A stretch of 64,000 nucleotides of DNA, taken from NCBI GenBank assembly GCA_000320545.1, contig ADNK01000241.1, positions 1 through 64,000 on the forward strand, written 5' to 3'. Position 1 is the stretch's first letter. Every line of letters begins with the position of its first letter. Below are positions 34,822-60,494 of the stretch, piece by piece. Source of the DNA: Bigelowiella natans CCMP2755. Its lineage: Eukaryota > Protista > Cercozoa. The notes beneath the pieces were generated by a model that saw nothing but the letters and a program-made list of their open reading frames with translations, was not told where the DNA came from and ran no database searches. The position numbers and the translations under genes were made by a program.

Positions 34822-52211
<17,390 letters not shown>

Positions 52212-53683: not shown

Positions 53684-54564
53684 ATGAGCAGCCCGCTGAA
53701 ATATATTTCCGGTGTATTTCGCCGTGCCCGGCAGAAGGTTGCTGACATCCGCGCGGAGAATCGGTTGCGGAAGTTGTTGGCGAGCAGTGGCCTGGTCAGC
53801 ATTGACCCCCATTTCGTTTCGGATAATACTAGAAAAAAGACTAGTAAATAGTGGCCATTCTGCACGGACGATTTCCATCTGCGTGCCCGTTTTCATAACA
53901 TCTACAGGGCCAAAAAAGAAGCGTCTTTTGTCCTTGTAGCCCTCGATATATCTCATACTCCATGTTGACAGATTTCGAACAGAGCATGTCGAACGAATAA
54001 CCTACCATTTATGAAGGTGCGGGTGACTAGAAATATATTCACGATGGAAGGAGAGAACTTCGACGTTGTGGAACAGGTGGGTATTGATTGCCCACAGTAA
54101 ACGCAGGCTGTATGCACAGTTGCTTATCAGTCTGCTGCTGCCCGCCCCCCCCCCCCCCCCCCCTTTCTTTTGACGCATGAACTACTCGTAGGTTTTAGAA
54201 AGGTTCCACGGTGGGCATTATCTCGTGGTGGTGGTTGGCTCACACATCTTACGTTCTTGTCCCGAGGGGGTGCTGGAATCCGTAAAGATTGATTTCGAAC
54301 ACCCAGATTCTCTATCGGACGTGATCTCAGCCTGTCAGGTGATAATAGGACTTGCATCTAATTCTGTTGTGCGTAGTAATCGTTTGAGGTATGCAGATGA
54401 ACCAAGGGACGTTTTCCCATTAGTAACACCTGTCGTCTTTCTTCTTCGTTTATGTATGCGCTAGTCAATGAATCGCTGGCTCTTGGCGGACGACAAGAAC
54501 ATCATCGTCCTCTGCGCAGATAGGTTGTGAAATGCGTTAATGGGTGCGCATGAGCGTGTGATGG

Positions 54565-54603
<39 letters not shown>

Positions 54604-56657
54604 AGTGAGAGAGAGAGAGAGAGAACGCTTGTAGTGAATGGTGACTGGATGGAGTGTACAAATGTGATAGTACAGTATAATATTGTTACAACCATATGGA
54701 TGTTGTTGCTGTTGTTTTCCACTTATTACCGTTCTACGTCTAGTTGCTAATTGAGACAACCAGTGGTTTTGAAATGTTGTATCTGTCTTTTCCCACTCTC
54801 CACCTTCCCACAGCAAACAGCTCGACAAGCTAGTGACGTGCATGCTCTACTTCAAGCTTCAAAAGGCGGCGGGAAAAGTGAAGTCTCCGGCGAATGAGGT
54901 CAAGATAGAAAATAATACGTTGAAGAATAGAGAGGAGACAACTTCTACCATGAAGGAGGAGGAGGAGGAGGAGGAGGAGGAGGAGGAGGAGAAGAAAGCT
55001 CTTGGAGATGGCGATGATGCCGGTAGTGCCGATGATAATGGAGTGACGATGGAGGCTACTGCTGCTAGTACTACTGGTGATGGTGGTGGTGTTGCTGCTA
55101 GAGCCCAAAGGAAAGCACTTGTTCATGAGAAGCCGGCAACAATGAGGGTCGATACAACGACACCAATCAAAAGTGATCATCGTCGCATTGCAACCGCTCA
55201 AAAACGGCTCCTAAGGCTGCTTCCATCGCATAGGTCTAACCCCGTACGTGCGAGTATATTCTGGCGCGCATTTGATGTGTGCTTGGGGGAGAAGAGGAGG
55301 GGCGGGGTTCCCGCTCCTTCTCCTCCTACTCCTCTCCACCTCTCTTCACCACTCTCAATCATCAGTTTAATGTTTAATCCTATCTTGTTGCTATGGCCAT
55401 GTTTCTGGGTGTGGTGTGGTGCTATTATGCATGCTTGGTATTGATGCACGATCGATCTTCTTAGGCGATTTGTCAAAGACTTCAAGGTGGCTATCGAATG
55501 CGGCTACTCTTCTGCTGGGGACCCCTTAGTAATAAATAATCGTAGCTAGCAACAATGATAATGTAGTGGATGGATACGCGAATCGCCAAACCATCATCAT
55601 ATTCACCATCATCACAACCATCATTATCATCGTCATCATCATCAACCTAATATTCCAACGATGATCGACGTTTGCACAGATTCTGAAGGAATTAGTGATT
55701 GAAAACCTACCCCCTGCTGATAGAACGGGGGCGAAGATCTCCATACTGATTCAACAGAATAAGGTATTTTGTGCTTGCTTTCTGTACGTGCATGTTTTAT
55801 CCTTCTGCGATAGTTATAAAGTGGCAGAAATGATGGTTGTGTGTGTTGCAGCGGAGGAGGAGGAAAAGGGGGGTATTCTTGCCATATTGTATAGTCCTCG
55901 AGTACAAGCGCCCTCCTCCTCCTCCTCCTCCTCCTCTACCTCTGTCCACGTATTATGTGCTAACATGTCGTACGCCATTCCACCAGCGATTCGCCTTCTC
56001 GACGATGCAGCGGGGCGGTGTGATCTGGCTGCCAGCGACAAAAAAGGACCCTGCCACAGCATGCATCTCTATAGGGTAAATATATAGCTAACAATAACAC
56101 TCAACAATTCTTCTTTAAAGAACACCTTCACGCTAAATCGGTCGTGAAAGGTTTACTCCACGATATCAGTTGTGGCACGCTACAGCTGCATCGAGATATC
56201 AGTATATTTCTATCATCATCATGATCATCGTATGCCCCCCCTCCCCCCTCCTCTCCACCCACACACACCGCCCACCACACCGTTACAGGGCCAAAGTCAT
56301 GGAGGATGCAGTGATAAGGGTCTATCATCACCCGGAGCGCGCCACTACGTCTAGGCCACAGAAGTTGCTTTTCAAGGTGCTGCTGTCCATCTACCTGACC
56401 GTGTATCTGTCCGTATGCGCTGAGAACGGTTGAGAATGATGAGGAACTTGTGTATATCGTCTGGCGAGTCTCTTATCGGTGACTCCGTGAGAAATCTGAG
56501 CTGCGATCTGCTTCAAGGGGGAAAACTAATAATCGCTCCTCCACATCTCAACCCCCCCCCATTCCCTTACTCCGAAGGAGAGAAAAGCCAACGACAAAAA
56601 CGGAGCAACTAATTCAATGTTCCGCTATCCGCAACCCCTTCCCCCTCCCCCCCCTCC

Positions 56658-56696
<39 letters not shown>

Positions 56697-56836
56697 AGGT
56701 GCAGATATATATGGACATCGCGAGGCATAGGGGGTACCTACTTCGGTACGAGAAGGGAGACATCGACGAGACGGCGACGAAGGACTCTTACCCATCCAAG
56801 TTCCGATTTCAGACCATTTTCGAAGGTTGCTGTCAT

Positions 56837-56901
<65 letters not shown>

Positions 56902-57267
56902 GGCCGTGCTTCTGGCCTCAGTTTCAAAATGAAGTCATTCGCCTCAAGTTGCATTACGATATCCCCTCACTTAGAACCTGATTCAAAAACGGTGTCGCGG
57001 CACGCGCAGCCGCACTCCAAACGCACGCAGAGGGCGAAAAAATACTGGTAATTCGTTGTTTAGAGCTGTTAGTACCAGCATTCCAAAACTATCGTGATTT
57101 ACCTAATACTACTACAACTACTACTACTACTACTACTACTACAACAACAACTACTACTACCGGTGATAAGCAAGTATAGCCCTACACCCTCCCGTTTTAT
57201 TTTCAGTAGCGACGTGCAATATGTTACTATATCTTCTGCAGGGTGACGATGACGACGATGATGATAT

Positions 57268-57302
<35 letters not shown>

Positions 57303-57782
57303 CCGGGCCAAGAAATTTCTCTAGTATCATCGGCAATCATGCTGAGTTATGCCGTGAAATTGCGGTGTTGTCGCGTTTTCGTGAAAACCAAGATGAGTCA
57401 GTCGCTGTGGTGTGAGACCGCCTACACTTATCATCGCTCTATTGCTGCTACTATGAAATTGTAAAAGGGAGGAGATGAAGAAGCGCAAGGGATACACAAC
57501 CATCGCCCGGGTCGACCTGTTGACCCTCTTGAAGGTTGGGGGGGGGAGTAGTGCGTGAGGAGGAGGGAGGAGGAGGAGCAGAGTTATGATGATGATGACG
57601 ACGACGACGACGACGACGATGATGATGATGATAGTGGAACGATGAGCAGAGCCAATGATCAACCCAAGTTGTAATAATGATTACAATAATATTGGGTGAG
57701 AGAGAGAGAGAGAGAGAGGGGAGAGGGATGAAGGAGGGGAAAGAGAAGCATAGCTGGTGTGCGAGGAGAATTTCCTTCTAAT

Positions 57783-57832
<50 letters not shown>

Positions 57833-58632
57833 CGGTTGTTCATACGTGTGATCGTACTGTCCTTAGGAAGAAGAAGGAAAGCAAAGAAGGTGGTTGTTGT
57901 TGCCTTTGTTTCTCTCCCTTCTTTCTTCTCTTTTTTTAAATTATATGTGATGATGCATGCCATGAACAAAGATCAACCCATATGGCAGTGTAGTGCATGC
58001 AGATGATGATGATGTAAAAACATGAATTCCTCCTCCCCCCATCCCCCTTTCCCAGTGTCGTTTGGGTGAGTAGCTGATGGTGAAGCGTTGTTGTCGTTGT
58101 CGTTGTTGTTGTTATTGTTATTCTTGTTGTTAATCTGGACAAAACGATAGTAGAAAAATGATGAAGGCATGCCATAGCAACCGAGAAAAGTACTAGCCAA
58201 TGCACTCACACACTTACACACACAATACACAATACACACGCATGGACAACTTCGAGCTTTTATACTGGTTTCCATTGAAATCGTAGTAGTGCATACATGC
58301 GTGCATGAATCATCATCACAAACAATGCGTGGGTTTCCCCCCTGCAATAGCGTTCGAATGCTGACGGGGAGGGTGGAAAGACTATTATGTGAGGGGCCAC
58401 TTTGATTTCTCCTTTGCCTACCAACGATTTAATCACGTCTCCCCTCCCCTTTGACAGATCCACGAGCGTGGAAGGTGATAGCAAGACAGAGGAGCACCAC
58501 GCCGCTCGCAACAGCTCCGAACACGCTGATGAAGGGCGCGAAATGTAACTACTAATCTGCGGCTGTATGTTCTAGTTGTTTCTCCTTCAAATGCTGAGAA
58601 TACTCGCTGTGCTCTGTGTGTGCTCTGTGTGT

Positions 58633-58696
<64 letters not shown>

Positions 58697-58795
58697 TGAA
58701 CTAGGCTGGACGACCTGAAGCTTGCGCAGCAGCTGCAGATGCAGTTTGACCTCGAAGCCAAAACGGAGGTGGATGGAGCAGGGAGCGGCAGCGAA

Positions 58796-58826
<31 letters not shown>

Positions 58827-59384
58827 GCAATTTTACCGGTAGTGAAGAGGAGGAGGAGGAGGCATCATCGCATCGTGTCTGTTAGATTTTATCTCTGGAT
58901 ATGCTGTTTACTATGTAACGATTTCACTGTCGGCCGCTTTCATGCCTAACTTTACACTTATGCACACACCTGTAAATATGTTGTGTGTATGTGTGTGTGT
59001 GGTGGGGTTGTATTTTTTTAACTCACTCTCTGTTCTTCATATCCTTTTCAGGCGACGAGGCGTATGCACGGCAGCTACAGATGCAAATCGATAGTGAATA
59101 TGTGCACTCGAGTCGAGAGCGCAGGGTAACGACATCGTTGCAAGCGTGCATGCGTGTTCTCATATTGTGTCTTATCATAATTATTTCATCGTCATCATCG
59201 TCATCATCATCATTGTCATCATCGTCATCATCATCATCGTCATCATCATCATTATCATTATCCCACGCAGCGGAGACGTGAATCGAGAACAGAGGTGTTA
59301 CTTCGAACGGGGGTAATAATGCATCATGCTACTACTACTACTACTACTACTTCTACTTCTACTACCGCCTTCAACATCTTCGTT

Positions 59385-59415
<31 letters not shown>

Positions 59416-59611
59416 CACTCAAGTGTCGTCTTCGTTACTGATTGTGTGCATCATCGTGTTATGTGGTTGTGGGGGTGCCTAACCCAGGCGATAGAACCAA
59501 GCCAGCTGCAATACGAGCAACTTCTAGAACTTGACGTACTACCTACCTACCTACCTACCTACCTACCAACATGCTGCCCAGATAATGGATGATGGGGATG
59601 ATAGTGATGAC

Positions 59612-59645
<34 letters not shown>

Positions 59646-60494
59646 GCAATGGTTACATCCACCCAGTTCCTGGAATATTTGTAAACTTCGAAAGCCGGTA
59701 ATTTATCTCTTCTGCAGCACGGGCTGAAGACAGTACAGACTCATCGGAGAAAGAATGAGTTTTTACAATTAGAAATGGAAAAACCATGATCGATTGCCCC
59801 CCGCCCCCCAACACACACACAGGCAGGAATCCAGCACGGGTTTCATAGAAACGCACAGCTCATTAGCATGCTTCCCGAATTTAAGTGTAAAGGTAATGGA
59901 TCCAACGATATTAGGCGTTCGTTGTCGAGTGTTTCTTTACATCAATGCATCATTGTGGAAAGAGTTCACACATCGAGCGATATCTAAGCAGAAGCTTCAT
60001 AGCGGTCATCGGATGATTGAATTGCACATTTCTCTACTGATACTTGATCACTTCCCAATCCCCCTCCCCCTCCCCCATCCCACTCAGGAAAGCAATGTGA
60101 GCAGAAGTGCATGGTCTGCTTCGAGAATTACGAGGAGGGAGAGTCGTTGCGGGCACTCCCTTGCATGCATACGTTCCACAGGAAATGCATTGACAAGTGG
60201 CTTCGTCTATCTAAGAAGGTGTGCTTTGAGATGGAGCATGAGGAGGAGGAAGAGGAGGAGGAGGAGGAGGAGGAGGAGGAGGAGGAGGAGAAGAGGGGGG
60301 GGGGAGGGGAGGTTGGGAATGGAAATATTTACGTGAATAAAATAGCGAAGCATATGTGTTGTGCGTTTGCATGCGCGTGCTATTTCAAGAACCAGTATTG
60401 AATTGTTGGCACATCATCTCACCCTCCCTCCCTCCCTCCCTAGTGTCCTATTTGCAACCGGAGAGTCGACGAAGCAATGGCTTCCATACAATGA
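53684..60494 (+). CDS. Multi-exon protein: PTEN/tensin-like pseudophosphatase, PTEN-type C2, two UIM-like helices and a RING-H2 E3 domain
   Basis: Phosphatase-like: [17 protein letters not shown]|[19 protein letters not shown]|[15 protein letters not shown]2: [11 protein letters not shown]...[10 protein letters not shown]...LLFK|VQIY...[29 protein letters not shown]-like: [12 protein letters not shown] and [11 protein letters not shown]. Then YEQLLELD and the [36 protein letters not shown]...|CPIC. Linker exon phases at about 57000-58700 are not uniquely resolved. Confidence 0.72.
56840..56900. repeat. (GTC)n trinucleotide microsatellite in an intron
   Basis: About 20 tandem GTC units. Confidence 0.95.

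Follow-up and report, generated by a model that had tools for sequence, protein, structure and literature searches.

Introduction

In auxilin/GAK, tensins and plant class II formins, inactive PTEN-like phosphatase domains followed by C2 domains serve as membrane addresses, with roles in clathrin uncoating, adhesion and actin nucleation, respectively. The dead PTEN modules known so far serve for targeting and are joined to an effector, which is a J domain, an SH2-PTB pair or an FH1-FH2 unit in these proteins. To what other effectors can such an address be joined? Here we describe a locus of the cercozoan Bigelowiella natans CCMP2755, at positions 53684-60494 on the plus strand of a 64,000-nucleotide (nt) stretch of contig ADNK01000241.1 (assembly GCA_000320545.1; the whole stretch is called the window below), in which a putative PTEN-type pseudophosphatase module is followed by two MIU-type helices and a RING-H2 finger. 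Like auxilin/GAK, tensins and class II formins, the locus begins with a putative N-terminal PTEN-type module that has a degenerate CX5R loop and continues into a candidate C2-like region, and, in the case of a single gene, it would carry an effector at the C-terminus as those proteins do. Unlike in them, the effector would consist of a RING-H2 finger and MIU helices, and the module is far more divergent, with no Pfam match and no orthologue found. With PTEN and six PTEN-like paralogs of the same genome, the locus shares the domain order, an alignable core, the catalytic Cys and the Lys that follows it. In contrast to the HCKAGKGRTG loop and the FxDHNP motif of these paralogs, it reads VLCADSKQLDK and FEHPD, and because of these replacements lipid phosphatase activity is not expected.

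The C-terminal part has its closest counterparts elsewhere. It shares with Arkadia (RNF111), ARK2C (RNF165) and RNF38 a YE-x-LL-x-L helix, a G..G(L/F)....I..LP segment and a RING-H2 finger at the extreme C-terminus, whereas the parts upstream of these are unrelated and MIU helices are found instead of SUMO-interacting motifs. A RING combined with MIU-type ubiquitin-binding helices is also known from RNF168 and RNF169, which show no homology to the locus outside the motifs; RNF168, which acts on chromatin, has a C3HC4-type RING at its N-terminus, while here a RING-H2 is C-terminal and the upstream module would suggest membranes. We give about even odds to the view that all this belongs to a single protein of about 710 amino acids (aa), in which a dead PTEN-C2 module, two MIU helices and an Arkadia-type RING-H2 finger would form a membrane- or phosphoinositide-targeted E3 ubiquitin ligase of an architecture undescribed in any organism. 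An initial annotation of the DNA, made from its letters, knew of no described PTEN-RING fusion, and none was found in the literature either.

An expressed N-terminal half with a dead catalytic loop

A 197-aa open reading frame of an MMETSP transcript, called P0001 here, is the sole true match to exon 5 in a phmmer search of 1.84 billion representative sequences; no other homologue of this exon was found among them, and the only other hit was a spurious repeat protein. Residues 1-183 of P0001 map by tblastn to five segments of the window, that is, exons 1-5 of Table 1 with the fifth running from 54814 onward, and over these residues transcript and genome differ by one substitution and by a shorter poly-Glu run in the former. 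Exons 1-5 are spliced and expressed. Because the transcript spans all five, the junction 54523/54814 between exons 4 and 5 is proven and the loop reads VLCADSKQLDK. The PTEN-type core with a dead loop (LCADSKQLD) proposed in the initial annotation is supported. After the poly-Glu run, the last 24 residues of P0001 (174-197) map with 100% identity to another contig (C574:13423-13494). The transcript is thus a chimera, joined at a GAG repeat, and this is probably an assembly join across the repeat. The shorter poly-Glu run in the transcript than in the genome suggests length polymorphism or assembly collapse. Exon 5, which has the top coding score of the locus, probably ends before a GTACGT donor at 55244, which was preferred to a parse that inserts a 22-nt micro-exon ahead of exon 6.

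What is left of the catalytic machinery? The transcript-confirmed loop retains the Cys, but neither the His nor the two Gly nor the Arg. Exon 3 aligns to the FxDHNPCP segment of the PTEN-like paralogs, with FEHPD standing where they have FxDHNP. Thus, the N-terminal half lacks the combination of the catalytic signature H-C-x-x-G-x-x-R and an acid-loop Asp. Since the His, both Gly and the Arg of the loop are gone, catalysis is not expected, and the N-terminal half would be a pseudophosphatase at best. The HCKAGKGRTG loop is kept by all of the six canonical PTEN-like paralogs (contigs C3094, C3310, C3532, C2525, C3040 and C2072). The genome carries at least six canonical PTEN-like genes with this loop intact, and the paralog on C3310 has two PTEN_C2 domains in one 746-aa open frame.

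Comparisons of several kinds, weak one by one but convergent, make it very probable that the N-terminal half has a PTEN-type fold. The top sequence match in PDB is the PTEN-like domain of auxilin (3n0a, E = 0.05), with residues 53-137 on 50-137 in the correct register. In hhalign against the six paralogs (P = 0.0048, Prob 7%) the loop falls on their P-loop, and a MAFFT alignment arrives at this register independently, leaving the Cys and the next Lys unchanged in all sequences. Exon 4 matches a profile of the paralogs at positions 105-119, just before the P-loop, with a score reached by 2 of 2000 natural decoys. The ten best neighbors in a protein-language-model search are all PTEN/TPTE-type phosphatase clusters (scores 0.82-0.90), which is to be taken as a lead only. 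The Pfam Rit1 DUSP-like domain scores E = 0.0016, short of its cut-off. It is to be added that the N-terminus (K..FRRARQK) presumably resembles the polybasic lipid-binding motif of PTEN.

A divergent C2-like region

A PTEN-style C2 domain had also been proposed, of which the end gains support and the beginning does not. When exact exons were scored against a profile of five paralogs, with 2000 natural decoys of equal length for comparison, exons 8 and 9 matched at collinear profile positions (empirical p about 0.0035 and about 0.0015), while exons 6 and 7 gave no signal. Exon 9 also has the best coding score among the short exons. The comparison therefore supports the C-terminal half of a putative PTEN-type C2 domain and leaves its N-terminal half unsupported; the C2 fold as a whole is a prediction. 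The coding score of exon 7 is poor in the phase-consistent frame. A second frame of 140 codons is open over exon 6, the presumed 88-nt intron 6 and exon 7 (55665-56084), so that intron retention or another reading of exon 7 is possible. When the whole genome was scanned in six frames, both PF10409 and PF22785 picked out other loci, seven in the case of PF10409, and neither picked out this one. Nothing usable came from PDB when the C2 exons were searched singly, or from the Atlas when exon 9 was the query.

Two MIU helices and a RING-H2 finger

Seven phase-consistent exons between 58458 and 60494 encode about 197 aa without a stop. The prediction of an intact RING-H2 E3 module in this C-terminal half is solid. 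The complete C3H2C3 RING of the initial annotation is indeed there, split between exons 16 and 17: once the 225-nt intron 60219-60443 is removed, the spacing is exactly C-x2-C-x14-C-x-H-x2-H-x2-C-x10-C-x2-C, and zf-RING_2 (PF13639) matches with a Pfam E of 1.3e-12 (48.2 bits against a cut-off of 27.3). Its nearest relatives in PDB are ARK2C/RNF165 and Arkadia (about 2e-13), and also RNF38. The YEQLLELD motif, likewise noticed before, ends at 59535, and together with the pre-RING G..GF....I..LP segment it is typical of the Arkadia-type class; a paralog on contig C1129 has LDYEELLRLDEG before its RING, like YEQLLELD.

The two helices upstream had been called UIM-like. Both are present, at 58712 and 59054, and they are the only matches to the pattern acidic-x-x-hydrophobic-A-x-x-L-Q in the six-frame translation of the window, where 0.27 would be expected; their pattern, however, is that of a MIU. 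The Leu-Gln pair is the highly conserved core of the canonical MIU (PMC5824887), and it is present in both helices of the locus. Both have A-x-x-L-Q and neither has a Ser at the UIM position, and Pfam UIM (PF02809) finds no match in exons 12 or 13 at E up to 10. By their sequence both helices are of the MIU type and not UIMs, and they are predicted to bind ubiquitin. Profile searches had been proposed with the initial annotation; in stop-free segments and in exact exons, zf-RING_2 is the only match, and PTEN phosphatase, PTEN_C2 and UIM give no Pfam match at threshold.

One gene or two?

The published genome of B. natans comprises 94.7 Mb and has about eight introns per gene, with a mean intron of 182 bp and a median intergenic distance of 960 bp (PMC13746701). 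The assembly used here (91.4 Mb in 3736 contigs) is rich in introns, and in the locus itself short GT-AG exons alternate with introns rich in simple repeats. Paralog searches found it to be single-copy and found no RING near the other PTEN_C2 loci of the genome, and database searches found no orthologue. The initial annotation took both halves for one gene on the ground that nothing interrupts the series of exons. This is not correct, as a 1632-nt stretch (56826-58457) holds no verified exon, and it may consist of introns with small exons or contain a gene boundary. Splice sites in this gap, 130 donors and 97 acceptors, were ranked by a position-weight model from 14 introns of the same gene, and exon coordinates were concatenated to check frames and lengths of the parses. 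Open and phase-consistent parses exist for one gene (710 or 717 aa) as well as for two, a gene A of 468-513 aa and a gene B of 210-261 aa. The one-gene model covers 53684-60494 with about 18 exons and about 710 aa.

In the one-gene model, the donor of exon 9 ranks 5 of 130 and the acceptor of exon 11 ranks 10 of 97. Between them, a 38-nt exon (57010-57047; acceptor rank 12 of 97, GTAATT donor rank 6) and a purine-rich 23-nt exon (57867-57889; acceptor rank 7, donor rank 1) make an open and phase-consistent chain from exon 9 to exon 11, with site ranks of 5, 12, 6, 7, 1 and 10. Neither exon 11 nor the exon of the first MIU helix contains an ATG, and the acceptor of exon 11 is C-rich and looks genuine; therefore, their transcription unit extends further upstream. 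With seven simple repeats, the gap is about as dense in them as the introns of the gene, while the flanks at 51-54 kb and 61-63 kb have few. The splice-site scores and the density of repeats tilt the balance slightly toward one gene, as does the scarcity of space for a second promoter, and we put the case for one spliced gene carrying both halves, judged from these features of the DNA, at about half.

Several points weigh against a single gene, and most of them suit two adjacent genes on the same strand, neighbors by chance, in which case there would be no membrane-targeted ligase. Gene A, with its start at 53684 and its stop at 57051, 57179 or 57415, would be a stand-alone PTEN-like pseudophosphatase with a C2 domain; gene B, starting near 57475 and ending with the stop at 60494, would be a small ligase with two MIU helices and an Arkadia-type RING-H2. 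The exon-free 1632 nt are far closer to the median intergenic distance of 960 bp than to the mean intron of 182 bp (PMC13746701), and a one-gene chain via 57242-57411 would need an intron of 1046 nt against the same mean. Each of the two genes can be parsed completely, and each by itself is a complete protein of a familiar type with nearly the average eight introns. Only one well-scoring exon in the gap begins with an ATG, 57475-57534; its donor is the seventh best of 130, and it can be spliced in phase with 57867-57889 and exon 11. At its 3' end, 57242-57411 has weak donors (rank 48-61) and a TGA lies right there, as a terminal exon would have it. No PTEN-RING architecture was found in the literature, nor was any transcript, predicted protein or orthologue that crosses 56.8-58.5 kb found in the databases, in part because the searches capped the length of candidates. 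The bridging exons of the one-gene chains are short (38 and 23 nt) or of low complexity and have no independent coding signal, their hexamer coding scores being inseparable from those of repeat-rich introns or a 3' untranslated region, and the splice-site model is small, with the chains chosen after many options had been inspected. On the other hand, the start exon of gene B lies only 59-424 nt past every possible stop of the PTEN-like frame, against the median intergenic distance of 960 bp, which leaves scant room for a 3' untranslated region, a promoter and a 5' untranslated region; an alternative first exon with an ATG at 57950 was rejected, having the worst donor of the gap (130 of 130). 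Repeat density is no lower in the gap than in the introns. No domain lies upstream of the PTEN-like module in this protein, and a dead PTEN module without any effector domain would, to our knowledge, be unusual. Two genes thus appear to us quite a serious possibility, somewhat short of an even chance.

A different objection concerns the N-terminal half alone, which could be an expressed lineage-specific protein with a coincidental likeness to PTEN and C2 domains, so that only the RING and MIU part would be functionally recognizable. The points of this kind are that no Pfam phosphatase family is over threshold for the N-terminal half, that PTEN_C2 (PF10409) finds no match exon by exon at E up to 10, that the paralog profile, run window-wide on intron-flanked exons one by one, stays at noise level, and that no homologue was found among the 1.84 billion representatives. 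AlphaFold failed on the single sequence (pLDDT 38.6). AlphaFold2 with a seven-row multiple sequence alignment reached pLDDT 51.8 overall and 68-81 in the core, and the top 20 Foldseek matches of this model are PTEN, voltage-sensing phosphatases and auxilin; since the alignment that guided it consists of PTEN paralogs and the matches have E of 0.17 or worse, this is consistency and not independent proof. Against coincidence, four independent weak tests agree on family and register, three exons fall on the paralog profile at correct and collinear positions with an empirical p of 0.0035 or less each, and the order of a polybasic N-terminus, a phosphatase-like core and a C2-like end is the layout of the family. 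We therefore regard a mere coincidence as improbable.

Searches with shorter pieces bear on these readings within their reach. Word-index searches reach only products up to 1.75 times the query, which places a product of 210-260 aa or 710 aa beyond them; they returned only P0001 itself for P0001 (candidates of up to 345 aa) and nothing for 57170-57412 (up to 142 aa) or for the RING exon (up to 205 aa). In two metagenome scans, P0001 found no match, and the RING exon matched nothing but unrelated RING proteins.

Possible function

If both halves are in one transcript, the protein would begin with a polybasic N-terminus and a PTEN-type pseudophosphatase fold, continue with a divergent PTEN-type C2 domain and a low-complexity acidic linker bearing the two MIU-type helices, and end in the Arkadia/ARK2C-type RING-H2 finger. 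By analogy with auxilin/GAK, tensin and class II formins, the dead PTEN-C2 module may bind membranes and act as a membrane or phosphoinositide address. The RING would have E3 activity and bring in the ubiquitin-loaded E2, the MIU helices might bind ubiquitin that is attached to the substrate or belongs to the growing chain, and the outcome would be ubiquitination of membrane-proximal proteins. A single protein of this kind would add ubiquitination to the roles of dead PTEN-C2 addresses and might be a natural tool for studying lipid-directed ubiquitination. Two genes would mean a very divergent expressed PTEN-like pseudophosphatase, so far from one species, next to an ordinary small MIU-RING ligase.

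Features of the locus

Table 1. Exons of the locus and the stretch between its two halves, in positions of the window.
Feature	Positions	Strand	Description
Exon 1	53684..53794	+	Start ATG at 53684; polybasic N-terminus, ends ASSGL; P0001 residues 1-37; donor GTCAGC
Exon 2	54017..54076	+	P0001 residues 38-57, 100% identity; AG/GT flanks
Exon 3 (FEHPDSL..VISACQ)	54192..54338	+	P0001 residues 58-106; equivalent of the PTEN WPD-like loop
Exon 4	54465..54523	+	P0001 residues 107-125; strand into the degenerate P-loop
Exon 5	54814..55243	+	Remainder of the dead P-loop, poly-Glu insert; first 57 codons match P0001; 3' end probable
Exon 6	55680..55763	+	Candidate first C2 strands; AG/GT flanks, phase 0, positive coding score
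Exon 7	55852..56075	+	Candidate middle of C2; one frame agrees in phase with exons 6 and 8; frame uncertain
Exon 8	56289..56376	+	Putative C2 strand pair; paralog profile 281-303, 7 of 2000 decoys as high
Exon 9	56699..56825	+	Putative C2 end; paralog profile 316-347 of 357, 3 of 2000 decoys as high
Stretch without verified exon	56826..58457	+	1632 nt; introns with small exons, or gene boundary
Candidate exons in the stretch	57010-57047, 57207/57242-57411, 57475-57534, 57867-57889	+	Open phase-consistent chains
Exon 11	58458..58544	+	Acidic/Ser linker; C-rich acceptor, GTAACT donor; phase-consistent with exon 12
Exon 12	58705..58838	+	MIU-like helix 1 and poly-Gly run; pattern count, phase chain
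Exon 13	59052..59125	+	MIU-like helix 2; pattern count, phase chain
Exon 14	59488..59535	+	YEQLLELD, pre-RING helix typical of the Arkadia/RNF38 type; phase 0 at both ends
Exon 15	59823..59892	+	Phase chain; matches the GAGVHHGLHQSQIERFP segment of the C1129 paralog
Exon 16	60088..60218	+	RING-H2 ligands 1-6 (CxxC..CxHxxHxxC)
Exon 17	60444..60494	+	RING ligands 7-8 (CPIC), short tail, TGA 60492-60494; phase 0 acceptor after a CCCT repeat

Repeats are found in exons and introns of the locus alike. Pure trinucleotide repeats lie within exons or candidate exons at 54954-54991, 55912-55936, 57244-57302 and 58802-58827, and their products are poly-Glu, which is confirmed by the transcript, poly-Pro/Ser, poly-Asp and poly-Gly. 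Introns contain (TG)n tracts, some of them joined to (CT)n or (GA)n, at 54566-54624, 56660-56694, 57783-57832 and 58634-58695; in two introns and at one candidate site these tracts stop within 10-35 nt of the acceptor AG and might act as the polypyrimidine tract or take its place. At 57698-57805, a (GA)n tract and a (TC)n tract are separated by 65 nt and can fold into a long hairpin, and a dozen sub-threshold Rfam matches to plant microRNA families in the gap were rejected as most likely artefacts of these complementary tracts. Upstream of the locus, the window has about 45 rows of tandem repeats within the 6 kb of 44000-50000, including long (AT)n arrays, and this repeat-dense part is probably a piece of a further gene, rich in introns and on the minus strand.

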